DNA of 64,000 nt from Blastocystis sp. Blastoise (lineage: Eukaryota > Protista > Bigyra: Opalinata). A model generated the notes under the pieces. It ran no database searches. It was not told the origin of the DNA and worked only from the letters and a program-made list of their open reading frames with translations. Position 1 is the stretch's first letter. Each line of letters opens with the position of its first letter. A program made the translations under genes and the position numbers. Of this stretch, positions 2,468 through 62,508 are shown one piece after another. The DNA is taken from contig JBBPEB010000034.1 in the NCBI GenBank assembly GCA_039096225.1, positions 372,001 to 436,000 on the forward strand, read 5' to 3'.

Positions 2468-6995
<4,528 letters not shown>

Positions 6996-9682: not shown

Positions 9683-11879
9683 TGTTGATAAAAATATCTG
9701 TATACTACTTTATTTAAGCAAAATAAATTTATAAATTTATAATGGTGTTTTTCCCATAAAAATGAGTATTTTTTTGTTTGTTTGTGATGAAAAATCACTT
9801 GTAGGCAGGTTTTTGTTGTTTAGCAAAGTGGCGCTTGGACCACCACAGACAGCCTCAAAAACAACCACCGCCTGGTGCTGGAAAAACCACATACCGACGG
9901 AAAGGTTACCACCAACCGGCGCTTCGAGGACCATTTTTGACTGTGAACAATTTTTTTTAAGAAGCAGTTACACAATTATTTTTCGCGCAAACAACACCAC
10001 TATTTGCCTCTTGACGAACATAAACACGCGAAATAAAAACACATATTTACTCTTATTTAGCGTAAAGTGGGTATTAATGACACATTAACAGGGTCTAATA
10101 AGTTATTTTAGAAGTCATTTACATTTAATTAAGATTCTTTTTTATTCTCAAAACAACTCATTTTCATCTCAATTGTACAGTCATGTAAAAAACCGGACAC
10201 GCCAGTGTTTTTATTCTTTTTTCTCCACGATTATTTATTATTTCTTTACAACTTTTTGAATTTATAATATATAATGATTACTCTATACAAAAATGTTTTT
10301 TTCTTTTTTATTAAAATAAGAAAGAATATCGAACAAAAAATGTCTAGTTTTTTACATTTTCTGCCTTTTCTTTAAAACTTTTCTTTTGAGTACTCCTAAT
10401 AAATATAAACGTATAAAATCATATATATATAATCTATGTGTATGCTGTAGTCTATATATACCTTATCTAATAAATCATTCAAGTATATTAACTCCTTCTT
10501 GACTGATCATTTCGTTTTTTTTTTGTTTTTTTTTTCTTACAAAAAAATTGTTTTGTGTTTAAATATATATTATATATGGTAGGTGTGTATAAGAGGTATT
10601 GATTGATATTATTTTACAGTACTTATACCCTTTAAGAATAGTAAATATCGTGTGTTTCTTGAAAAACTGGACTTTTAACCCTCAAAAAACCCCTTTTTAG
10701 TTAATTATTTTAACAATACTTCCATCAAGTGTGTATTATTTTTTTAAATTTAAGAGTTTGCATTATCCTTTTAAAGAATATAAATATTATAATGTTTCAA
10801 GTAATATTTTAACACGATAGAGATATGCTCAAAGTTTGTTGTTTTTTTTCATTTGTTCGATTGCCAAGATTGAATTTGTTTCTGATCAAGATATTTTGTC
10901 TACAGTGATAAACGATAGCATAAGGCGTATTCATAATATAAAAAACTATTAAAAGTTATTCATTTTTTCTGATTGACAATCTACATTTTGTTCACATTTT
11001 TTAAATAACTTTCAATGGTCTTTACACTATTTTTAGTTGCAACTTATTACTATTTTTTTAATTACTGTATGTTAAACAATTCGTTTTTTTATTATTGAAA
11101 ACAATTCGTGGTGAAATATTGTTTTTTTCCCTGGTTGAATGCAAATGGGGGGTCTTTTTTTGTAAAAAAATATTGTATATTCTTGTTATTTTCCTCAAGT
11201 TATATGAAGAAGTTATCAATTCTTTATAAATTATCTTCTACATATATAACGAAATTTAATATGATATAATTGTATTGTAAGATAATATGTTTTATGATAA
11301 AGTTGTAAATGAGCTCATTGCTTGTGTAAAATCCTTTTAGAGATAGGTTTTTAAAAAATAATTGTCCTGCTGTCATGTGCATAGTACTCCGTCCATATAT
11401 CAGTAATCTAGCATCAAAAATATCATTTTAAATACAAAACAAACACTGGTGGGCAGCTTTTTAAAATCGTGAAAATTCTGGTATGCACCCTAGCTGTTTT
11501 TTGGTATAAAAAAAGTGATTTTCTGGTATATACAGGACTTTTCCTGGTATAAACTTATGGTGGGTTTTGTATTCCTATAGTGACGGGCCATGTATCTTTT
11601 TATGACTACGACTTATTTTTAATGTTTTTTTTTGGTATTCCATAATGACAGTGGTTGTATTTACTGTTGATATATATAAGATAAAAATGTCCATAACAAC
11701 ATCTATTTTACATTTTAGACTTTCATTAGGATTATTTTAGACTGTTTTAAACACATTATTTCTTTGTCTTCTTTTAATACATATTTTAGTTGTTTAAGCA
11801 TAAAAAACAATAAAAATAACAAAATACAAAAAAATAAAAGAATAAACAATTAAATAAAGTAAAATATAAAAAACTATTA

Positions 11880-12450
11880 TTTAATTTTGACCGAGGGACT
11901 TTGTTTTCTACTCATATAAGGAACCTATAAAAATATAATTATAGAAATGTAATAAATAAAAGGATAAATAAATACATACAGTTTAAGAGCTCATGGAGAA
12001 TCGCATTTCCTTGAAGCAGAACAACAAGAGAGGTTACCTTTGAAATCAAGTTATTTCTGGTCAGCTGATCGTTATAGAAGAAGCTATATTTATAATCACG
12101 AAGAGAATCTGTGCTTATTTTTGAATAATTTGAGTTATATATACAAGCTATAGAATAATAGATATATAGGGAATGAAAAAAAATACCATTTTAAAGAAAA
12201 CAACCAACTTTATAAATATTAATAAATATAAAGATTTTTGTAAGTGTTTTCTTGAAAAAAGAATAAGCATGGCCCTGAATATGAATTTGTATGAATTTTT
12301 TTATATATAAGAAAAGTACTAAAATCCAGGGGTTATTTCGACTCTGTAATATTTTTAGTAAAACTTCACTTTGAAGTTAAGAAAAATGTATATATTAATG
12401 CTTGTGTAATATGGTTGTTTATAAATATATAAATTGTACTCTGACAATGG
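11880..12450 (-). pseudogene. Decayed intron-containing gene in the left arm of the inner element
   Basis: Exon/intron pattern aligns by eye with 17160-17850. Contains stops; product unrecognised. Confidence 0.5.
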
Positions 12451-13195
12451 TTTTAAGGTTACTGGTGTAAAAAACTTCCATTCTTGAAGGCAATTACTTT
12501 TTCATATTTGTTTTACTTATGAGCTTTATTGACGTTGTAGTGTTGATTGATTGTCAGTGAGTCGTTTTGAGTCAAAATATATACAAATAACGAACTTTTA
12601 TCAAACTGATTAACAAATACTGAGATAAAATATTTTATTATATTTATGTTTTCTTTTAATAGCAATACACTTGTAGAGATGAATAAGTGTAAAATTAGCT
12701 TTTAAAAAGCTTAATTAAATGGTTTTAAGGTTATTTTCAATAAATAAAAATATTTTCTAAAAATATTATAAATATATATATACAAGCTTTATTTTCAATT
12801 ATTTTCATTTAAAAAAGATTATAAAAACTAAAAGATTATTAACTATTATATATTATACAAAGAGAATAAATAAAATAATTTATTAATATTATAATAATAA
12901 AAAGATATATATATAATAAAAAGTAAATATAAAAACAACAATATAATATAATTACTTATAATAAGAATGAGTTAATAAATACTAGTTGATTATTTTAATT
13001 TAGGATAGATTTATATATATATATAACATTTATTATATAACCTATATATATATAATCCATGTATATAACCTATATGTACATATACGTATATATTGTTCAT
13101 TCTCCATTGTATATATTATCTTTTTAAAACAGGCTACTGATTAAGAGAAAGAGTAATAGTAGTAGAGAAAAGAATTACAATAATTATATATCTAT

Positions 13196-13510
13196 TTAAT
13201 CTATATAAATATATTTAAATAGATATAAATAAATATAAATAGATATAAATAAATATAAATAGATATAAATAGATATAAATAAATATAAATAGATATATAA
13301 ATAAATATAAATAAATATAAACATATATATAAATATAAACAGATATAAATAAATATAAATAAATATAAATAAATATAAATAAATATAAATAAATATAAAT
13401 AAATATAAATAAATATAAATAAATATAAATAAATATAAATAGATATAAATAGACATAAATAAATATAAATATATTTAAATAGATATAAATAGATATAAAT
13501 AAAGATTAAT
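13196..13510. repeat. 10-bp minisatellite (ATATAAATAA/ATATAAATAG)n
   Basis: About 30 tandem units read directly; explains the spurious ORFs at 13196-13536. Confidence 0.9.
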
Positions 13511-14025
13511 AAATGAATATATATATACTGAAACATTCAACACATTCCTCGATATAAATAAAACTCTCTCATTTCATTAGTCTTCATTTCTATCTATTCT
13601 TTTTATTATATATGTATATATTAATTAGTTGAAGAATACAATAATTAAGAGTAATTAATCTCATTTTAAGGCATTTATTTTCTACTTAAGTATATTAATT
13701 CTAAAGGTGAAAGTATAAGAAGAATCACGGGAAAAATGATCTATTTATAAATAGATATAATAGATATAGTATTCTAAATTGTTTGTTAAACGTATATAAT
13801 AACATATATGTATATATATATATAGTTTTATGTATAATAATATATACATATAAATATAAAAAATGATATAATAATAATAACATTATATACTATAGGAGAG
13901 ATAGTAGTACCAGAAACAAATAACATAAATTTCATTGAGTACTCAAGAAAGAATAATGTATTCTTACACTATATATGTTTATATAAAAATAAATATAGAC
14001 AAATACATATAGAATAGTAGCTAAA

Positions 14026-14067
<42 letters not shown>

Positions 14068-15749
14068 TATTGTATATACATAATATATACTTTATGTAAA
14101 CTGTGATTCTCTACTAAAGAAGAATCATAAATATATTTAACTATATATATATTATAATATAAATTAATAAATACATAGTAATTTTAATATATATACTTAT
14201 ATGAATAATCTCGAATTCTTATTTTATATTTTATTCACATCATAAGAAGCACAATATTCAAAACATATATATAATATCTCCTTGTTGATTTAATACATAT
14301 ATAACTATAGATAGAGAAAGCTAAAATGAATTTATAATATATAGTAATATATAATGTTATATATAAAGTGTAATAACAGTAATATATATTTAATAATATA
14401 CATAATAGTATGTTAAACCATATAAAACAGATTAACCAAAAGAAAAGACATTTTTGAGGGTTCATAGTAACTTCTCTACCACTTTCTTTTCATGATACTA
14501 AACTATATATAATAGATACATATAATAATATATTTATTTGGAAATATTATAATTAAATATATACTTTTATAATAATATGTTTAACTTGATATAATTCCAA
14601 ATAAACTGAACTCGCAATAAATAGTGAGACTCTCTTGACACTAACCCATTCTTATTACAATCGAGAGAAGTCTATCTATATCTATATTCATATATATCTA
14701 TGAAATAAAAATAGTAATAATAAAGATAATAATAATATAATTATATATAATAATATAATAATATATATATAACTATTTTTTTACAATAATAACATTAAAA
14801 TGCATATAAATAAAGATATATATATAAATATATAATCGAGATTAATCCATATAAACAAAATTATTAATATACTAATTTTCCAAATCCTTTTATTAAAAGG
14901 AATAAACTTTTCTATATTTTTCCCTATAAGAATTTATTCAATTGTCTAGTTTCTATTATACTGAAAAACTATATATATATATATATAATAAACAATATAA
15001 TAATAATATATGTATATAGAAAACATTATATATAATAATATATATAATAATATATATATACATAATTATATATATAAATCATTTAAGATTCGTCATAATC
15101 AATATAATAATAACTGTTTTCTTTAATTCTAAATATTTTATTCTGCTATAGACATAGATATATAATAAATACTACAATATATAATATATATATACCATAT
15201 TATAATGAAAGCAAGTAGTAATAACCTATGTTCTATCTTTATGCTGATTAATTCTCAGTATTCAAATAGTATTAGATGCCTATATATATAATACAAAATC
15301 ATTTTAATAATTTAAAAATATATTGAAAAAATTGAGAAATATTCTTAATAATATATATATATATAATAATATATATATATATAATAATATATATATATAT
15401 ATATAATAATATATAATAATATATATATATATATATATACAATAATTTTCTATAATGAACTTTGATATAATTGTTCAATTAATCAAATGATACTATATAA
15501 ATAATAAATAGAATGAATATATAAAAAATATATATATAATAATGATAATAAATAATTTATAAATATATAGAGTAATAAATAATATAAATTTTAATACATT
15601 CAATTCTATATAAAAAAGTGAATAAATAAATCTAAAATAAAATAAATATATAAAACAATATTCTCCAATATATTTTAATTCAATCTACATCTAAAATAAG
15701 AAAATAGAATATTATAAAAATACAAAACTAATAATAATAAAAAAATTTA

Positions 15750-16230
15750 TAAATACCTAATAATAAATACGAAAAACAATTCTTTCAATTAAATCACTTT
15801 TTCAAGATTCGATAACTACCCTAGAGTAATATAGATAGTGAATAAAGTAAAAATAAATAAAAAAATAAATAATAATAAATATATACGGAAATGAATGTCT
15901 CCCATTCTCTCCTTTTTAATTTATTTTGAAATTTTTTTGATTTGAAACCATCCATTACTACCATTAAAGCAAATTGAATGATCTCATTCAATTACAACCT
16001 AAATAAATAAAATAGAAATTAGACAAAATTATTATATTTTATATTTATATACTTTTGAAGAGACCTGCGTGACTAAAGAGAAGGCTTGAAACTGTTGGTG
16101 ACATCTATAAGTTCTAAAAATAAATAAACGATAACATAATTACTGATTAAGTATTTGTATATAAAATAATTATAAAATATTTACTAATTTAAAGGTTCAC
16201 AGACTTCTTGAGATAGTTGATGCTCGAAAA
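15750..16230 (-). pseudogene. Decayed 5' exons of a gene in the right arm of the inner element
   Basis: Homologous to 23290-23760 (shared TCTCCCATTCTCTCC...TTTTGATTTGAAAC block and similar splice positions). Confidence 0.5.
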
Positions 16231-17159
16231 TAAATGAAAAGCAATCAACAAAGCTTGATAAGCTTAAAAATAAATTTTTGATTTTTTAAAAAAATAATTT
16301 TTTTTATACAATTTTTTCTTTTGTTAGTTAAAGACTTTTTTTCGACCGATTTTTTTCTTTTTTTTTGTCTTAAACTGAACTCAAACCCTAACCCTAACCC
16401 TGGACAAGAAAATGGTCCGCCAGTGACAATTTTTCTGACATTCATAAGAATGGCAACTTTATCATAATTCATATTCAATTCTATGTTCTTTCGAGTCTGT
16501 GAATTCGTTAGTATACGTGAATAATTCAATTAAGCAAATTGCCGAACAAAATTAAAAATGATTGTCCTAGATATTGTGGATAATTTCTTGAATATGTTAT
16601 AGAAAGTCTTAAATTATCAGTTAATATACAAATAAAACATCTTACTATCAATTTCTTAGATATAAATATATAAATATAAAACAACGAATTTATATGAGTG
16701 TCTACACAACATTATACCAAGTTTATTTTTATTTTTGTGGTATAAATTACTTTCGTCGGTATAAAAAAAATTAAAGACCGATTTTTTCGTAATTTTGGTA
16801 TAAATTTATGGGGAACCTGGTATAAAAGGGAAAAAGCTGCCCACCAGTGAAAGAAAAATATTTATACATATATTTTTGGTAAAAAACCGGACATTTTCAG
16901 TTAAGCAGTATGCAATATTTTTTTAATAATAAAAAATATATAGTTGTGTACACCTTGGTCCATAATATCTTAAGAAAAAAAACATTTAAAAAATGCTTTA
17001 AAATAAAAGAAAAATAAACGAAAAAAAGGACTGGTGTCCGGTTTTTTACATGACTGTAGTATAATAAAATAACAATAAAAATAACAAAATACAAAAATAA
17101 TAAATAAATAATTAATAAATTAACATAGTATTTTAATATGTTTAACAGCCATCCCAAAG

Positions 17160-17850
17160 CATTGTTTTTTGACCATTTTGAGTAGCTATAAAAATGTAAT
17201 TATAGAAATGTTGATAATATAATAATAATAAATAACATACCTTATATAGAATATATCAAAAGCAATCGTCCCTTCTAATTCTATACCAGTTCTGACAGCC
17301 TATAAAAAGAAAATCATAGAATTGATCAAAAATATAATAATAATAAATAGCATACCTTTTACAAACACATCAAGCGCCACCTCATCTTTAGTTTCAAAAC
17401 TATTCTGAAAGACTATAAAAAGTTTAAAATAAAAATGATAAAAATATAATAATAATAAATAGCATACCTTGAACACACACATCAAGAACCGATTATACTT
17501 CAAGGACCACCAGCTATAAGAAGACAACTTTCAAACCAAGTCATTCCTGTTCAGTAGAGCACTAAAGACGAAGTCCTAACTTAATCCAAGAAAAACATTG
17601 TGCTCATCTTCTATTTGTTTGAGTCATAAATGATAACTATATAATAGAATATATGTAAGAATAATAATACATACCATCATAATTCAAAAACAGCAACAAC
17701 ACAATATTTAATAAATAAAAAAATTATGTGAAAATCTTTTATAAAAAAAATTAAAATCCAGCCCCAAAACGGAATTTGTAAAAAATTTCACTACATAAAA
17801 ACAAATTTTAATTTTACCCCCTCAGTGGTTTCTCTTTTTTTATCTCTTGA
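17160..17850 (-). pseudogene. Decayed intron-containing gene in the left arm of the outer element
   Basis: Exons bounded by GT/AG with in-frame stops; homologous to 11880-12450. Confidence 0.5.
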
Positions 17851-19976
17851 GAGACTGAATACTAAAAAGTTAACATAGTTTAAATGTTACTGTCTATTTA
17901 TAATCAATGACTATTATTTTTATTTTTGTGTTATGGTAAGTAAAATTAGGTCACTGAAAGAGCAATGACCAATTTTGAACACAATGAAAACCATATTGTG
18001 TTTAATTGTGTAATTATATTAATTATATACTGCTTCATTATGATAGTTAGGTCATTTAAAAAAAGAAAATGTTAAATCTGATATACTTTTACAAACTGAT
18101 TGACTAATTCTTTAAAAATATTTTTTATGAATAATTACTGGTTCTTTTTATTGCTACATACTTGTAGAAATGAATGTATAAAGAAATAAGTTTTTAGTGA
18201 ATCAATTCAAAGAGTATTAATAGAAATTAAAGTGTAAAAAAAATATTACTATAAACAAAACTATATATGTATAAACCTCTTACTTATTTAGCTAGAAACG
18301 TTAATAATAAACTAATTAATATTCTTATGATATAAAATAAAAGAAGAAATAAATAAATTAAACAAAATAATATTATAAACGAATATATATATAGTATTTA
18401 GTAGATAATAAAAAGAATAATAACATGAAATAGTAATTAAATATATATAATATTTTATTCCAGTTTATTATGTTCATAAAGCGTTCGTTCGATTGATTGT
18501 AAGAGAAGTTAACAGAAGAATGGATAGAGAAGCTTATTTTATATAAATAATACTAATAATAATAAGATATAGATTTAGTATAATAGATTAAGAAGAAGGT
18601 AAGATTAATAATAATAATAATAATAATAGTTATATATACTAATAGCTTCATTAATTTAAAACAACTAAATATAATCTTCTGTATATATATAAGAAACATA
18701 AACTTCATTTTCCCCTATATATAATTCTTTTATAGCTCCTATATTTTAGCTATTATTATTTCATCATTTTATTTAATATTCTTCTGTTATTGTATAGTTA
18801 AAAAAACAAGTTGATACAATACATACCCTATAATAATAATAATAATAATAATAATAAAATATACTTTAAATATATATGTATAATAAAGTGGCATATAGTA
18901 AAGAATGTCAGGCTTCATATATATATTGGGATATAAATTGAAGAGAAGGGATATAAATTAATAGAATTGCAGCATAATCTGACTTTCAAAATCTATTTAT
19001 ATGTATAAGTATATAATAATAAATATGAATATATGCCATTTTGATAGTTGTTGAAATTGTTCATGACATAATCGGAGAGATGAGGAAGTAGTATATATAT
19101 AGAATCATAGGTATCAGATCTATATTGACCTATATATATAATAAAATATTATAATAATAATATTACAAATAATAATAATATGCATAATAATAATAATAAT
19201 AATCACAATACATACCCACAATTTGTGAGAGTAGTTGAAGACCTAAAAGGGGAGGTAAGGTGACTGTAGTGGGTAGGCAGTGGGTAGAGACGGTAGTGGG
19301 AGGGGTTTGAATGGGTGTTGGGGAGGTAGTTGTTATATATAGAGAGGAATCAGGATTTGTAGGTAGAGAGAATAGGTAGGAGATCAGAGAAGGAAGTAAA
19401 GGAAGACTATATATATAGTTATATATAATAATAATAATAATATGCTTTATTAAGATATTATAAATAAATAATAAAACAAAATACATTTCTTTTTTCATAA
19501 TATTAATATAACTCTTTAATAAGTTGACAATAAGTACATATACATCTAATGTATTAATATATATAGAAGAGAGAGAAGTAATCATATTCATAATCTCTAT
19601 TAATTCTTCATTTACATGTAAATAAAAAGGATTTAAATCTGGTTGGCGGGGAAGAGGGACTGATGAATTCTCAATTTGGCGGGAACTGAATGTTTGTAAT
19701 CCATCAAGAATAGATGTCAAACAATTTATTATATAAGTCATATAATCATCTATATATATGTATATATAATAATAATAATAATAATAAATATTTACAAATA
19801 TATAAATATAAAATATAATCATAATCTTAATAATAATATATATAATTACGAATAATTTGTTCATTAGAAATATTATTATTTGAGGGGTTTTGGTTATGAA
19901 TACAGGCACTTATATTGGATATACAGAAACGAATAGAACTCTATATATATGTATATATATATGCTGAAATATAAAC

Positions 19977-20033
<57 letters not shown>

Positions 20034-20429
20034 TTTATATACCTTATGAAAATCAAAATCTTGTCGAAGTAAACGTGTGAATGAACATATTTCAAACAAT
20101 ATATATAAGTATTCTAAGGGTAGTGAAGAAGGTACTGAAGGGTAGGGAGAAAGAAGAAGAGAAGGCTTATATAATAATAATAAATATAATAATAATATCA
20201 AATATAATAATAATAATACATATAATAATATATGCATACCTTAAGTAATGTATATAGTTCTTCTAGTTGTTCATCAGTAATAAATATTTTATGTATATAT
20301 TTATTTAGTAAATATCCACTTCTCTTCATAAGTCCTTTTTCTTGGCATTGTAAACCAAGTATATATATAGAGAAACAAACGTCATATGTATTCTCCATTG
20401 AAGAAAGAAGATTTGTATATCTATAACAT

Positions 20430-20491
<62 letters not shown>

Positions 20492-20651
20492 ATAGTAAAT
20501 AATAATAAATGTGATAATAATTATAAGTCTATATTTACCTATATATAGTTTCTTCAAGAATAGAAATAACAAACACATGCTTATGGGCAGCATAATCGCG
20601 GTTATTCGAGAAACACATTAACATATTCACAACAAATGGACCCATAGAATC

Positions 20652-20743
<92 letters not shown>

Positions 20744-21301
20744 AAAAAAGTAATGCAACCAATTTAGATATAATAATAAAAAAAAATAAAACAATAATAA
20801 TAATAATAATAATAAACATTATAATAATAATGCTATATACCCTTCAATGTTGAGTCTCCAAATACAGATATTAAATGATAAAGAGCTTCTATATATCTCC
20901 ATGTATATTTCGAGTGATCCCCGCGGGGATCAGCAAGATTTTGTTGAAGTTGTTCTAAGAGTAATGTAACATAGCTACCTACTTTTGTAGGATTATTCTT
21001 TAATATAGTTTGTGCCAATTTATAAACTTTTGTTTGATAATCATATATATCAATGTTAAGAGATAAATCTTCAGATAAATCAAAATTTTCAGGGAACCTA
21101 TATATATATATAATATTATGTAGATTCTAATTGAATCAATAATAATTTAAATAAATAAAATAAAAAAAAATAAAATAAAATAAAATAAATAATATATATA
21201 TACATCATTTGTTGAATAATCGAGTCCATGACAGAAGGGAGAAGAGATAGAGAAGGGAAGAGAGAGAGGAAATAAGGTTGTTCAATATGACTGCAATAAT
21301 C

Positions 21302-21387
21302 GTGGAAATGAAGGAAAATTAATAAAGAACGAGTAGAATAGATTTAAAATAGAATAAAAATAGAATAGTATAAATATGAAAGGATAT
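21302..21387 (-). other. U12-type AT-AC intron (exportin-T copy)
   Basis: 5' ATATCCTTT, 3' TTTTCCTTCATTTCCAC. Phase 0 removal gives VLEILI|DYCSHI in frame. Confidence 0.85.
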
Positions 21388-21769
21388 AATTAATATTTCA
21401 AGAACAGGGTATACACAGGGTGAGGGATAAAATGTGACTTTCCCAAGGAAATCGAGAGATATAGAGAAATAAATAGAAAGAAGAGATGCAAGACGATTAT
21501 CAGCCTGTATAATAAATGGAATAATAAATATAATGATAAAATAATATTAATAAAAAAATAATAATGATAATAAGTAGAAAATAAAAATAATAAATAGAAT
21601 AATAAAACATAATAATAAATAGCTATATATAATATATACATCATTCTTAATAAATACATGAAATTGAGCCAGTTCATATCCAATAATATTAATCAGTTCC
21701 GCTAGAATAACAAGGAAGTCCATATCAATATCTACAGGAGAAGAGAAAGAAAGAGAAGGAGAGAGAGTA

Positions 21770-21896
21770 GTATATATAGAAGGTAAGAAGTTAAAGAAGA
21801 AGAGATAGTTGTATATATAGAAGGAGAGAAATAAATGTATTAAATATAATAATAAAATATAGAATAATAATAATAATAATAATATATAAAAGATAT
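21770..21896 (-). other. Probable U12-type AT-AC intron (exportin-T copy)
   Basis: 5' ATATCTTTT, branch-like TTCTTTAAC, 3' TATATAC. Phase 2 removal restores the frame. There is no GT or AG anywhere inside the intron, but alternative AC acceptors exist. Confidence 0.65.
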
Positions 21897-21988
21897 ATAT
21901 TGAGTAGAATGAGACAGTTAATCTTATCATCTAGACTCATACCTTTATCAATTATCTATATATAATAATAATAATAATAATAATATAC

Positions 21989-22628
21989 TATAGCTATCAT
22001 CAACTTTATTTATTGAATATATTATAAAAGTCTTCACAAAAGCCATTAATAAAATGAGATGAATTCGATATATATAAGTCAAAATATTTATGGTAATTCT
22101 GTAATATTCATAGACATATACAGAACAGACTAATCATTTCACTATTATTACAATCTAAATAACACCCCAATTGTGATTTAGTAATACAGAAAGAACGGTT
22201 TCTAACAAAAGTTTATTAACCTTCAACAAATAGTGCTTTATTCACGATTATATATAGAAGAATTGAAAAAGAGACATACATAATAATAATATAATCTATA
22301 TCTTCATTTATTGTGTTCATTAACGAATATTCTTTATGATAATAGTGTTCATTTTAAAGCTCTTTCTGTAAGTGACATTAATTGTTTTTGTATAGATATA
22401 TAGAATAAGGAATACTATCAAGAGACTAAGTATAAGAAAATTGAGAAGACAAAGAAGGTATTGAAATACTATTTATATAGATACTAAAGATTATGATTAT
22501 AATAAAGATAATAATGATATATATATACAGAATATATTGTTTATTTTTATATAATGAATTAAATATAGTAGTAATAGAAGCAGATTCAGTATGTATTTTA
22601 ATATATATTTTAATACATTTGTAAACTA
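21989..22628 (-). pseudogene. NOL6: Decayed captured fragment of NOL6 (corresponds to ~4058-5006)
   Basis: Nucleotide similarity to four NOL6 exons, e.g. TTTTAAAGCTCTTTC, ATTGAGAAGA...ATTGAAATACTAT, ATATAATGAATT, AGAAGCAGATTC, AATTCTRTAATATTCA. Several stops and frameshifts. Confidence 0.88.
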
Positions 22629-23289
22629 TAGAATAATAATAATATAATAAAAGGATAAAAGGTAATTATAATAATATATATAGTGTATATATATGGTTTT
22701 CTATAGATTCAATAAGACAGATACATAATAAATTTCTATAAAAACTCACTATTTCTGTTAGCTTGTTCATTTGAATATACCTGTAAAGTATTATTTAATT
22801 AATATATATATATACTATTATTATAAATTTTGTTAAAAAAACATCTTTCTTTTGTATCTTACTTTTTATTATTTTTGTATATAATAATATTATTTAAAAA
22901 CCTAAATATAAATAAATATAAATATATTCATATATATTAAATAAAAAATGTATATATATGTATATATTCTTCTTAATAATAAAAAAGTATACATATATAC
23001 CATCATATTCAATTAAAATTGTTTTAAACATCATTTGTTAATTAAAAATTTCCTATATAAACCATAAATAAGATAAAAACTATTATAAAAAATATATTAT
23101 TAAAAAAATATTATTAATAATTAAAAGTAATATATATATATATAATAAAATATTGAACTATAGAACTAACTGTAAATATACAATAAAATAACTATATTCA
23201 GTATATTTAAAGTTAATATAATTAGAATAGCATTGTAAAATAATATAAATTAAATAAAAAACAAAATTAAATAAAAAATATATATGTAT

Positions 23290-23760
23290 AAATATTTACC
23301 TATAAGAATTTTTGTATTTGTTTTTGTTTCTTAATTTTGAATATTTAATAACCCAAGATGACATTATTGTAGTATATTTAATATCCTAAATTAAAATAAA
23401 TAAATAATATAAAATAATAAATATATACAAAAAAAAATGATCTCCCATTCTCTCCCATTTTGAATTTCTTGAATTTATTTTGATTTGAAACTGTTCATAT
23501 ACCTTTTCAGAGTACCTTGAATCATTCCAATTATCAATAACCTATATAAAAATAATAATAATTATCAACATTTACAATACTTAGTTTAGCATACTTCTGA
23601 CTACTTTATCACAATTGAATCACTGTCTAATAGCTTCAGGTACTGTCAATAACCTATAAATACAAATAAATATGAATATAATTGCAATTAAGTTTTTGAG
23701 TTTCAAATAAAAAGAAAATATTAATACTACAGAGATGATATATACTTCCTGAGATAGCTA
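23290..23760 (-). pseudogene. Decayed 5' exons of a gene in the right arm of the outer element
   Basis: Homologous to 15750-16230; in-frame stops. Confidence 0.5.
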
Positions 23761-25953
23761 GAATAAAAAATAAAATATAAATACTAATAATTCATTCAGA
23801 ATATGTATTTAAAATGCTGCTTTTTTTTATAAGAAAATAAAGTTAATTTTTTTTATAAGAAATTTACAGTGTAATTCTTTTAATACAAAGTCAGTCGCCA
23901 CTGAATTTTCTTAAAACAGAAAAAGTCTGCCTACTATTTAACTTTAGATTATAAAAATCATTGAATTATTATAAATGGATTTATTGATAAAACTATTAAT
24001 TATATTTGTTTGTACCGTTTTGAATGAAGAAGAATTTGTGTATAGAATGTTATTCATTAACTTTAATAAGAATAAAAAGGAAAAAAAAGCTAATTTGTTA
24101 AAAATATTTTTTTTGATATCCTTAAATAAAGTATTCATATAATGTGTCTACCAAGTATTCTAAGCACAGTCAAATGCAAATTATTCAACAAGAAGATAAT
24201 TAAGAAAATGTTGATATAATCGTAGTATTCTTTTTAATTTTATTTAAGGTTCTTCTAACTGTCCTCATCAAAATAAACCCAGTAGACACCTATATTCAAC
24301 AGTTTAATACAATATTTTTCCATCACCATTAACTAGTTGTTTCTATAACATTTTCACATCAATTACAAGTATCATCGACTTTCCAAACAATATATATTAT
24401 TCATATTAAAAATTATATACTCTAATACAAAATAATTAAAAAAATGTAATGTTGTGTTTGCTTTTTATAAAAAAATACACAAAATGAGTATCAAGCGCCA
24501 CTTGGTGGTCAAATAGTCGAGCTAAAAAAAGATTTAAGAGCGTGTTCATTTTTTTTGGCGCTTAGGGGTACCACCAAATGGGGCTACACGGGAAAAACCT
24601 GCCTACAGGTGAATTATTTTTTGTTTTGTTAAATGAGAAAAACATAACAAGGAATGAATATTATTGTTTACTATGTAGCCACTGATGAATAAAACACTTG
24701 TGAAAAAATGATACAAAAGAAATAAGAAAAAATGTGTATTATAAATTGGCGAGGTATGATCAAAAAGATATATAATGACTGTCTATGTTCTAATTTCTTT
24801 TCCCTATATGAGAATAACTAAGATAAATATTAAAATGTTGTTACAAAAAAATATTTCTTAAAAAAAAAAGAAGTTCAAGTGGTGTTAGACGATGAGAAAT
24901 TATGTAAAGAAGAAATAACAAAAATAATAAAATAATGGAAAATATTAATTGGTTAATATTAATATAGATAGAAATATAGATTAAGAAAGGAGGAAATGAA
25001 TAAAAAAAGAGAATGATATAAAATAGATCTAAAGAAAAAAGATCTACAGATAGAATTAATATATATATATATATATGGAATAATAAAATTCAAAAAAAAA
25101 AAAAAAAAAATACAAAAAAAAAAAAACAATAGAATTTATATATACAAATGTAATAATAATAATAGAAATACAAGGAACGAATATTCATAAAATGATATAT
25201 ATAATAATATAAAATAATATATATATATATATATGTTAAGTTCAGTATTATTTCAGGAGATAATAACAAAAAAAAAAATAATAATAAGTTTAATTATAAT
25301 TAATAATAAATCTTATAAACAAAGAATTATATATATATATATAATGTACAATAGAATTGGTTTTTTTTTATATATAGATAAAATAAAATGTTAAAAAAAA
25401 ACAATCAAACATAATGTTATATATATATTTGAAAAAAAAAATAATAATAATACAACCTTTGATTTGTATAATAGATAACAAATAGAATAAGTCAAAAAAA
25501 AAAGAAGAAGAAGAAGATAGGAAATGAATTGAATAATAAAATAAAAGAAGAAAAAAAAGAAAGAGAGTGTATTTTTTTAAGGATAAGAAATAATATAAAA
25601 AATAGGGTAGAATATAAAATTTTATCATACGATTTTACAAAAATATAAAAGAAAATATATATATATATATACATATTAAAGAAGAAGAAAACCTAATATA
25701 TATATATATATATATAGAAATGTTCAAATATATATATGGGAGTATTGATAATTAATAAAAATATTAGAAAAATGAGAAATAATAATAAAATGATTCAATT
25801 GAATAAAACAAAAAAAAAATTTTAAATTGTTATATATATGATATAATAAAAAAAATTAAAGTATTCATAATATAAAGTAAGATTTATAAAATTTGAAAAA
25901 TAATGAATAATAAAATATATATTATATATAAACAATATTCATATAAAATTTCA

Positions 25954-27074
25954 TTATTCTTTTTGAATAATTTCTTTAATATTTGTAATTAGAAGGATTA
26001 GTGTTTGTTTATTTGATAGTTTAAAACAATCAAATTCATCACGAAATACTTGTATAACTGTATTCATATGAAATTCATTATGAATATCTATAAATTGTAT
26101 ATATTGATATAATTTCATTAAAACTAATGATTTTATTTGTACATTTATAGTAACTCCTTGATTTGTTTGTTCAATAAATAATAAATCGGCAATTAATTTC
26201 TTCATATTAAAATATTGTTTATCATATACTTTAACACGTCTTTTTAAGAAGAATCCAGGTATTAAAGAAGGAATAAGAGGATTAGGAGGAGGAGGAGGAA
26301 TAGTAGTAGTAGTAGTAGTAGTAGTAGGAATAGAAGGAATAGAAGGAATTGGAGATAAATCTTCAGAAGTAGTAATTGTAGTAGTAGTATTATATGTATC
26401 TATATTATTATTATTATTATTATTATTATCTTTGTTAATATCTATATTATTATTATTATTAGTATTATTAATGTTAGTACTTGTATTTTGGTACTTTTCA
26501 ATTTTACTATTATTATTATTATTATTAATCATATTATTATTATAATTATTACTATTATTATTCATATTATTACTATTATTATTCATATTATTATTATTAA
26601 CATTATTATCTTTATATCCATATTGAATAGAAGCACAAGAATAACTTTCAGGACGACTTGGATAATAATCTTCTTCTTCATAATCACGAAGAGAATCATG
26701 AGTATAATTATGAGGATCTTCAAAAGAAGGATCAGTAAGCATAGTATCAGTATATATATAAGGCATACTATGTCTATAAGACAGAGATGAATTTAAATTA
26801 TTATTATTATTATTAGTATTATTTAAATTCTTATGAGTAGGGGATGATTGAGGTATAGATGAATTTATATGAGCATATAAACTAGAAGAAGGATGAATAG
26901 AATTTCCACGAGGAGAACTAACATTAATAGGATATATATAATTATTTGTTGTTTTATTTAATCTATTTTTAGAAGTAGAAATATCTGAATAAGTAGGTAT
27001 ATGACTCTCATTTATATTATTATTATTATTATGTTGAAATGAAAGACGACTTGGTAAAGAAGGAGTAGGAGTAA

Positions 27075-27135
<61 letters not shown>

Positions 27136-27276
27136 TGATTCATTTTTATTTTCTTCTTGTATTATAATAGGATTAATAGAAGAAGGATAGATAGATTGAG
27201 AAGGAATTGAAGTTAAAGGTGAACTTATAATATTTTGAGACTTAGTAGTAGAATTATTGAGAATAGTATCTGATAG

Positions 27277-27335
<59 letters not shown>

Positions 27336-27419
27336 CTTTTATGGAACTAGTAAGAATATCCAATGAAATAAGATTTGACGTAGTTTCACTTGAATTATTA
27401 TTATTAATATTATTATTAA

Positions 27420-27452
<33 letters not shown>

Positions 27453-27729
27453 CTTTATTATTATTAATAATATTATTATTACTTTTAGGAATAGGATCTT
27501 CATGATTCATACCTACATAAACAGGTGTAGGATAAATAGAAGGACTATTTATATTCATAGATATCTTGGAATTTCCACGGGGAGACTGTATAGAATGAAT
27601 AACTGGTGTTGTAATAATTGTAGAAACAGTATGTATAGGAGATTGTTGAGGGGAAAATAATTGTGTAACTGTGTTCGTAGTAGAAGAAGGATTAAAAAAG
27701 GAAGGATTTGGTGAGAATGTAGAATTTAC

Positions 27730-27816
<87 letters not shown>

Positions 27817-28918
27817 TATAATCATATTATATATATAATATATACAAAAATGAGATTTTAGATCACTATTTTTTGGAGTAACATTATTAGGTGCTATATT
27901 AGCCGAGGAAATCGGATTAGGAGATGCAACACCATAGGGAGAAAAAGGATGAGGAGAGAAGAGAGAACAAGATATAGTCTATAGAATAAATAATAATAAT
28001 ACTAATAGAATATATATATATATATATATATACAGAATTTCTTGAAGGATATTCATCAGTATCTGTCTATATATTAAAATATAAATATAATAAATATAAT
28101 AAATATAATAAATATAATAAATATAAATATAATAAATATAAATATAATAAATATAATAAATATAAATATAATAAATATAAATATAATAAATACATAAAAT
28201 TTATTGGATAAATCACTATATCGTTCTATTCCCTTACTATCGCGTTCATCAAGCCCTACTATCGACGTCGATAAGCATTGACCAGCGGAAGAAACACGGT
28301 GATGGGTAGGGCGATCATAAGAAGATGTATCATAACGATACGAAGGATAATAAGGTGATTTTTGACGTGAAGATGAAGATGAAGAAGATGATGATGATGG
28401 TAAATAATTAATAGGTTCTTTATATACATATTTTGAAGTAGATAAAGAAGGAGGTGACATTTCGTTTATATAACGATTATCTTCTAGAAAATAAAAATTA
28501 TAATAAATATATAATAAATATAATAATAAATATACCATAATAATTATTTGACACTCTATTTACACTCGATGTTCGTGGAGATACCATTTTTAGTTCTTTA
28601 TTTGTTGATCCATAACCGCGGTTATTTGTTCTAATAAAAGAGTCTATAGGAAGATCATATTTTTGTTGAATATCTTGTATATATCCTTTATAATAAGCAT
28701 TTTGTTCCCATAATAATTTACGTTCATTATTTAAATCATCAATAGTGACTTTTTTAGATGTATTTAATTGTGTTAAATAATCAATTTCTTCTTTTTGTTT
28801 ATTTATATAGATATTTTGACTTTCAATTGTACTTTGTAATGAATATATTGTATCTTGATATCGTTTATATATAGCAGAAGAATTCAATGAATAATTATCT
28901 CCAGATGGCTATAGTATA

Positions 28919-62460: not shown

Positions 62461-62508
62461 GGCGTACTACCAAATGTGGCTAAACAAGAAAAACTCTGCC
62501 TACCAGTG
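62460..62508. mobile_element. Solo right end of a CAC-family transposon
   Basis: GTACTACCAAATGTGGCTAAACAAGAAAAACTCTGCCTACCAGTG aligns with the outer element's right end GTACCACCAAATGGGGCTACACGGGAAAAACCTGCCTACAGGTG. Confidence 0.8.

Follow-up and report, generated by a model that had tools for sequence, protein, structure and literature searches.

A decayed NOL6 fragment is an old passenger of a recently multiplied Pack-type CACTA transposon in Blastocystis: apparent loss of cargo introns by way of the element's own spliced transcript

We analyzed a 64-kb stretch of the genome of a tortoise-gut Blastocystis (20% G+C), hereafter called the window, in which a degenerate piece of the NOL6 gene lies inside a transposon only a few kilobases from NOL6 itself. 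Our data indicate that the piece is probably an old passenger module of a mobile CACTA family, that the window element is one of several copies produced in a recent burst, and that the spliced form of the cargo has apparently overwritten parts of individual copies. The initial annotation had described the piece as a decayed, DNA-level copy of NOL6 taken by the transposon from the gene next to it. The first part of this interpretation, an old NOL6-derived transposon cargo with introns, stands; capture from the adjacent gene does not find support.

The host NOL6/Nrap gene is a multi-exon gene on the minus strand at 2468 to 6995. Its last exon (2468 to 4096) matched the Pfam domains Nrap_D5 (E = 3e-29) and Nrap_D6 (1e-8), and its first exon (6594 to 6995) matched residues 61 to 113 of human NOL6 (E = 0.0015). 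The exons were searched one at a time, not as a joined protein model; Pfam searches with the small exons and a PDB sequence search with exon 4462 to 4929 returned nothing usable, and the identity of the gene thus rests on its terminal exons. A genome search found no second full-length NOL6 gene in the assembly, which leaves 2468 to 6995 as the sole full copy.

To compare the cargo with this gene, positions 21700 to 23000 were used as a blastn query against the window. Three collinear plus/plus blocks were recovered, pairing 22305 to 22519 with 4577 to 4791 (81.6%, E = 1e-52), 22505 to 22716 with 4886 to 5110 (74%, E = 3e-30), and 21956 to 22132 with 4009 to 4207 (70.9%, E = 4e-23), while the other matches were simple-repeat noise. 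Local alignment of four exon blocks to 2468 to 6995, with 200 dinucleotide-preserving shuffles per block as the null, yielded z values of 42.8, 11.6, 3.2, and 15.7. These results confirm that 21956 to 22716 derives from the central part of NOL6 as a degenerate copy at DNA level, on the same strand, with introns and about 30% divergent from the gene, and the similarity clearly exceeds the shuffled background (z up to 43). The match runs slightly beyond the limits given there (21989 to 22628 in the element, about 4058 to 5006 in the gene) and now covers 21956 to 22716 and about 4040 to 5115, respectively. The NOL6-derived cargo itself (21989 to 22716, minus strand, defined by blastn, alignment, and shuffles) consists of pseudo-exons with stops and a frameshift: both stops reported earlier, GAG>TAG and GGA>TGA, are present, and a 2-nt insertion additionally shifts the frame. 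The intron predicted at 22469 to 22528 is real, since a spliced contig that is probably RNA omits exactly those 60 nt. On the donor side, MAFFT and blastn delimit five exon blocks at about 4040 to 5115 (minus strand), and both ends of this part fall in (AAT)n/(AT)n intron microsatellites of NOL6. A processed pseudogene or retrocopy of NOL6 was ruled out, as sibling copies keep all introns of the region plus one that the host gene has lost, and as the piece is internal to an element with inverted ends and target duplications.

Members of the CACTA (En/Spm) superfamily have the inverted ends 5'-CACTA/TAGTG-3' and a 3-bp target-site duplication, and the autonomous ones encode a Transposase_21-type DDE transposase. 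The element that bears the NOL6 piece, designated family A, occupies 9796 to 24611 on the plus strand and measures 7.9 kb when a nested insertion is excluded. Its left end at 9796 reads CACTTGTAGGCAGGTTTTT, and its right end at 24611 is the reverse complement of CACCTGTAGGCAGGTTTTT. These CAC...GTG inverted ends are of the CACTA/TAGTG type with one base off (CACTTGTAGGCAGG and CACCTGTAGGCAGG), and sister families have the CACTA-type ends CACTAGTAGGCAGG. The window copy is flanked by the duplication aat (9793 to 9795 and 24612 to 24614), and 3-bp target duplications were found in all five family A copies checked (aat, ttt, acg, cta, and tat). In the whole assembly (33.3 Mb, 34 contigs), there are exactly six family A end pairs, compared with 0 to 1 matches for a control pattern, and another 23 ends of related type have the sequence CACTAGTAGGCA.... 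Five sibling copies share exactly the boundaries at 9796 and 24611 with the window copy; their identical cargo and ends, but different flanks and duplications, reveal that the element is mobile as a unit. Based on ends, duplications, and mobility, family A is a genuine CACTA element. No transposase open reading frame (ORF) was found in it: the sole ORF of at least 150 aa (19163 to 19909) lies inside an exportin fragment. The lack of its own transposase and an interior made up of host gene fragments with introns place it among Pack-TYPE elements. Its right arm and right inverted end (22717 to 24611, plus strand) are 99.3 to 99.7% identical in the siblings and 93 to 94% identical in an older copy on contig C29.

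The window copy alone contains a 6.9-kb nest (10178 to 17054), which is absent from the five siblings; these join 10177 straight to 17055. The nest is a 1.5-kb element holding a 5.4-kb element, the former 100% identical to an uninterrupted copy at C31:1109060-1110528 and the latter 100% identical to copies on C13, C15, and C23. Given this identity, the nest is recent and provides no evidence of age. Part of the 5.4-kb nested element (15350 to 16021) is 68% similar to the family A right arm at 22911 to 23564. A regular-expression scan of the rest of the window for CACTA-type ends found one further end, at 62508 (minus strand, CACTGGTAGGCAGAGTTTTT), which comes from another related element and whose partner the simple pattern did not match. 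Two 623-aa ORFs, 11 to 1882 and 25954 to 27825, were considered as an inverted pair and rejected because they are unrelated.

NOL6 is not the only host gene represented in the element. A second cargo, a 3.1-kb fragment of an exportin gene of the Xpo1 family, lies at 18830 to 21955 (minus strand) and was assigned by donor comparison and Pfam. Its donor gene resides on another contig, at C4:1663442-1666441 (L037:4443-7442), where Pfam detects Xpo1 and where the sequence is 88 to 89% identical to the fragment. According to the family alignment, the NOL6 and exportin pieces are joined by a hybrid GT..AG intron of 33 nt (21956 to 21988, minus strand). Positions 17297 to 18446 are about 74% identical to more than 10 loci within about 30 kb of contig ends on C32, C17, C13, C31, C4, C29, C16, and C14; judging from this resemblance, the segment is probably a third captured fragment, derived from a subtelomeric gene family.

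The same cargo, which the initial annotation had proposed to look for in other copies of the element, was found in five further family A copies on three other contigs (C16, C21, and C24). Over 7,120 gap-free columns, the copies C24a, C21b, and C16a show zero substitutions among them, the window copy differs from this trio by 14 substitutions (0.20%), and C16b differs by 15. Nine of the window copy's substitutions are private, whereas the three identical siblings have none. Older relatives on C29 and C24 (the latter designated C24d) bear the same NOL6 piece, and the assembly (33.3 Mb) contains 11 NOL6-carrying elements in total. Over the 587 columns common to all NOL6-derived sequences, the Jukes-Cantor (JC) distance of the cargo is 0.128 to the C29 carrier, 0.325 to the still older C24d, and 0.355 to host NOL6. 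The last value bears out the earlier view of an old event; set against 0.20%, it makes the capture more than 100 times older than the split of the window copy from its siblings.

The surroundings of the NOL6 piece have changed over this time. Its left flank is unrelated among family A, C29, C24d, and a second CACTA family, lineage B, as judged by blastn with default scoring; long AT-rich alignments between families obtained under +1/-1 scoring were discarded as spurious. The family A copy C21a is a 13.3-kb chimera in which 6.2 kb of family A gives way to a different 6.4 kb. The switch lies inside a microsatellite intron after the NOL6 piece, the 6.4-kb part contains a 964-aa ORF (L024:5998-8892; C21:437497-440391, minus strand), and the right end is only 88% like that of family A. 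The 964-aa ORF is distantly related to the putative transposase of lineage B (23% identity, E = 3e-10). The unrelated left flanks and the C21a chimera indicate that the NOL6 piece is an old module shuffled between elements at simple repeats.

Lineage B comprises three elements of 13.1 to 13.9 kb, on C19, C23, and C7, with the CACTA ends CACTATGAGGCAG and, in two copies, the target duplications aga and tat. Their cargo corresponds to host NOL6 4040 to 4810 plus 5390 to 6110 (overall about 4040 to 6110) at a JC distance of 0.106; it is thus longer than the family A piece and separately diverged, albeit from the same gene region. Lineage B also has an 822-aa ORF (L019:4534-7002; C19:667533-670001). 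In Pfam hmmscan, this ORF had no match even at an E value of 10, and its only sequence relatives were four paralogs in the same genome (34 to 38% identical); by language-model features, it scored 0.95 to animal protein-atlas clusters with PF02992 (Transposase_21) members, and we regard it as a putative transposase. Three-point branch lengths over the 587 shared columns were 0.31 for family A, 0.06 for lineage B, and 0.05 for NOL6, which points either to independent capture of this gene region on two occasions or to one uptake later overwritten from the host gene.

The same NOL6 region therefore appears to have been captured twice. The alternative, which we consider unlikely, is that families A and B inherited their pieces from one capture in an ancestor of both. 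It would fit the facts that one and the same (AAT)n intron (host about 4040 to 4056) holds the start of each piece, that the two pieces are oriented alike with respect to the right end, 1 to 2 kb away from it, and that modules have demonstrably been exchanged at microsatellites, as in the C21a chimera and the unrelated left flanks. However, it leaves a five-fold rate difference between two pseudogenes (0.31 versus 0.06) unexplained; moreover, lineage B lacks host 4810 to 5390, which is partly present in family A, and has 5390 to 6110, which family A is missing, and the left junction sequences of the two are unrelated. Possibly, the resident NOL6 passenger, being old, directed another uptake from host NOL6 by homology; this would account for the left breakpoint common to A and B.

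With respect to the origin of the cargo, NOL6 is indeed close to the left end of the element, as the initial annotation had noted: the donor part is 4.7 kb and the start codon 2.8 kb from 9796. The question is whether this nearness records the capture, that is, whether the element took the fragment from the neighboring NOL6, through gap repair, template switching, or two neighboring insertions, with the window copy as a resident founder or master from which the others descend. The chance that one of 11 carriers falls within 17 kb of the donor, on either side, in 33.3 Mb is about 1%, or 1 to 2% if the six exportin pairs are counted, a figure that is suggestive but post hoc. In the Arabidopsis Pack-CACTA model, the only published one in which such capture has been followed in real time, new elements form at the donor locus and hop locally (PMC6379663). 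Furthermore, within the young family, divergence is greatest for the window copy and C16b, both of which retain an intron-like unit at about 18827 that is missing in the four youngest copies. On the other hand, the nine private substitutions of the window copy, versus none in the three identical copies, indicate that its present sequence is not their source. Outgroup rooting does not put the window copy at the base either; with the exportin donor and C29 as outgroups, the six copies offer too few polarized sites to place it. The exportin donor on C4 matters most here. Under strict locality, the lineage would have to have been elsewhere after capturing NOL6, which leaves two options, capture by the family over long distances or relocation of the lineage after the NOL6 capture, and with capture not strictly local, nearness to a donor is not expected; a resident founder could be rescued if the exportin module came by recombination between elements. 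In addition, the older carriers C29 and C24d lie on other contigs, and a scan of the window found no CACTA footprints or solo ends in or beside NOL6. Capture from the immediate neighborhood is not supported by the distances either, with siblings only 0.2% apart on C16, C21, and C24 and the cargo about 30% from the gene. We therefore consider local capture doubtful. Since the window copy belongs to a very recent burst, its position 2.8 to 4.7 kb from NOL6 says little about the capture site and is most likely due to chance or to reinsertion on the same chromosome, although the chance figure of about 1 to 2% is low enough for a historical link, through a resident founder or linked transposition, to be possible.

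The copies also differ in their introns. MAFFT alignment of the six family A copies disclosed nine presence/absence differences, eight with GT..AG and one with GC..AG ends on the coding strand (eight CT..AC and one CT..GC on the plus strand). A unit at about 17637 is missing in C16b, the unit at about 18827 is missing in the four youngest copies, those at about 18993 and 19128 are missing in C21b and C16a, and that at about 19407 is missing in C16a, while C21b precisely lacks the hybrid intron 21956 to 21988. The remaining three, all on the minus strand, are missing only in the window copy: an 83-nt GT..AG intron (site 22131-22132), which is present in the five siblings, C29, C24d, lineage B, and host NOL6; a 41-nt GT..AG intron (site 22209-22210), which host NOL6 also lacks; and a 94-nt GT..AG unit (site 22275-22280), whose position is ambiguous by 4 nt and whose acceptor lies 33 nt inside the former exon. 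The exons separating the three sites are identical to those of the siblings, and the 60-nt intron at 22469 to 22528 (minus strand; L021 joint 5681>5742, CT..AC on the plus strand) is kept in the window copy and spliced in the RNA. Because all three introns are found in C29, C24d, and lineage B, and two of them in the host gene, these differences are losses in the window copy; likewise, the exportin donor keeps the introns at 19128 and 19407, and those differences are losses too. Adjacent introns were lost together, three in the window copy and two in both C21b and C16a. The losses form short internal patches with retained introns on either side, showing no 3' bias, and thus fit short conversion tracts better than full-length cDNA replacement. 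Moreover, four of the intron differences, representing at least three separate events, occur within the zero-substitution trio C24a, C21b, and C16a. A slow background process would not be expected to produce so many, and the number points to erasure at about the time when a copy originates.

We aligned Logan contigs to the C24 copy, in a comparison that spans L021:4190-6400, with the exportin introns at about 17637 to 19407 lying outside this interval. A 2,310-nt contig from run X1 (organism A, probably RNA) matched the C24 copy with 0 mismatches and omitted exactly the 83-, 41-, and 94-nt units, the last cut at +4. The three units missing in the window copy's DNA therefore equal three of the joints of the X1 contig, and the deletions match splice junctions used in probable RNA. 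The contig also omits the 60-nt intron (22469 to 22528), a 135-nt intron (21504 to 21638), and an 86-nt intron (21302 to 21387), all of which are kept in every DNA copy. Since this combination of skips is found in no DNA copy, the contig represents a spliced chimeric NOL6-exportin transcript. That X1 is an RNA library is our guess, for which the six canonical joints argue. Thus, as read from this probable RNA, minus-strand transcription of the cargo yields a chimeric NOL6-exportin RNA, which is spliced. The 86-nt intron (minus strand; L021:4297-4382) has AT..AC ends on the coding strand and is U12-like; it is also spliced, with a 3-nt difference, in contig X2 from a poly(A) gut metatranscriptome. 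As for reverse transcriptases, at least 20 RVT_1 loci with open frames of 764 to 2,787 aa, most above 2,400 aa, were found in the genome (among them C23:75618, C15:725695, and C4:2419696, and 17 more), and from these frames the retroelements look intact and are possibly active.

The per-copy intron absences were read from the genome assembly, and copies that are 99.8 to 100% identical are difficult for assemblers; spliced reads that corrected a collapsed repeat, for example, might have produced the differences during assembly or polishing. We regard such an artifact as very improbable. It would be expected to hit all copies or the most expressed introns, not short patches of adjacent introns that differ between copies, whereas the observed patterns are copy specific and partly inherited, with C21b and C16a having the same two losses. 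The unit at about 18827 sets the window copy and C16b apart from the four youngest copies, a division that recurs at five substitution sites among the five complete copies. Furthermore, old diverged sequence shows the same kind of event, as host NOL6 and the exportin gene are each without one intron that transposons have kept.

In host NOL6, the site of a precise intron loss is 4359-4360 (minus strand), established by alignments and by the open frame. All 11 transposon-borne NOL6 pieces retain an intron of 41 to 50 nt at this site, whereas the host frame is open across it (...AEDQQACAEYRAFWGAKSELRRYKDG...) and reads through a conserved Nrap motif (...AEYRAFWGAKSELRRYKDG...). A 44-nt GC..AG unit (window position about 18993) is retained in four of the six transposon copies but absent from the exportin gene on C4, and from the alignment this looks like a second host intron loss preserved as a fossil. 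Transposon copies can thus serve as fossils of host introns, which makes the NOL6 and exportin losses datable relative to the captures.

From the observed homology, element ends, target duplications, copy set, and distances, we infer the following history and overwriting mechanism. An ancestral element would have taken up about 1.1 kb of genomic, intron-containing NOL6 DNA with breakpoints in (AAT)n intron microsatellites, and the captured piece would then have decayed into a pseudogene. Subsequently, the piece would have recombined with different neighbors in the subfamilies C24d and C29, in family A with exportin, and in the chimera with the putative transposase. The family would then have multiplied in a very recent burst, with the window copy as one of its products, and the spliced form would have overwritten short patches in individual copies; in the window copy, one patch of at most about 480 nt would have removed three adjacent introns. 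The element's own spliced RNA thus appears to be the means by which cargo introns are erased. The spliced form might act as cDNA, produced by the intact reverse transcriptases that the genome encodes and then recombined with the element, or through RNA-templated repair of the gap left at excision. We put forward only tentatively that erasure is coupled to transposition, such that excision-gap repair sometimes copies the spliced transcript (as RNA or cDNA) and not a sister copy; the sole pointer to the link with transposition is that intron losses are in excess of substitutions.

The classical cDNA model predicts intron loss biased to the 3' end. This reverse-transcriptase model has been tested (PMC3652778) and has been proposed for CACTA transposase genes (PMC4158355). 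Family A resembles it in the exact removal at splice sites, the co-loss of adjacent introns, the spliced transcript, and the intact reverse transcriptases. However, family A losses occur between copies with zero substitutions and hence proceed very fast compared with point mutation; they form short patches in the interior, with no 3' bias; and what they affect is a pseudogene within a transposon and not a gene under selection. Break repair templated by transcript RNA is the subject of work in yeast as well as in human cells. For double-strand breaks in human cells, it has been shown experimentally (PMC12065846, PMC11390984). Intron loss at the repaired break, the readout of that pathway, is what the family A copies resemble, and a cut-and-paste transposon makes breaks at every excision; unlike the systems in those studies, family A is known from sequences, and break and excision are what we infer from them.

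Among gene-capturing elements, family A most resembles Pack-CACTA and other Pack-TYPE transposons, such as Arabidopsis Pack-CACTA1a (PMC6379663), in its CACTA-type ends, 3-bp duplications, nonautonomous nature, mobility, and presence in several copies, and in uniting intron-bearing pieces from several host genes in one chimeric unit that is transcribed. That paper also names Tpn1 of morning glory and rice Pack-MULEs among further Pack-TYPE examples. Unlike the plant elements, family A resides in a stramenopile gut protist, has its breakpoints in intron microsatellites, and includes copies that have shed cargo introns; moreover, NOL6 cargo is also found in relatives with a putative transposase ORF, and the region was apparently taken twice. 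In the genome paper on Blastocystis strains, transposable elements are mentioned only as a fraction of 5.6 to 7.5% (PMC12129017).

Altogether, our data describe a gut protist with an active gene-capturing CACTA family, in which capture and the exchange of modules have left at least three dated layers. To our knowledge, gene-capturing CACTA elements are known mainly from plants. The family also illustrates that cargo lying beside its donor gene is not evidence of local capture when the element comes from a recent burst. Copies that are identical over 7 kb and differ by excised introns matching spliced RNA offer a view of intron loss as it happens, with a rate that far exceeds that of point mutation, and make it possible to test cDNA against RNA-templated repair on natural material. 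If repair-coupled erasure is true, Pack-type transposons would be a natural, countable reporter of RNA-templated break repair, and such erasure would provide a concrete route for intron shedding in a genome of this lineage.
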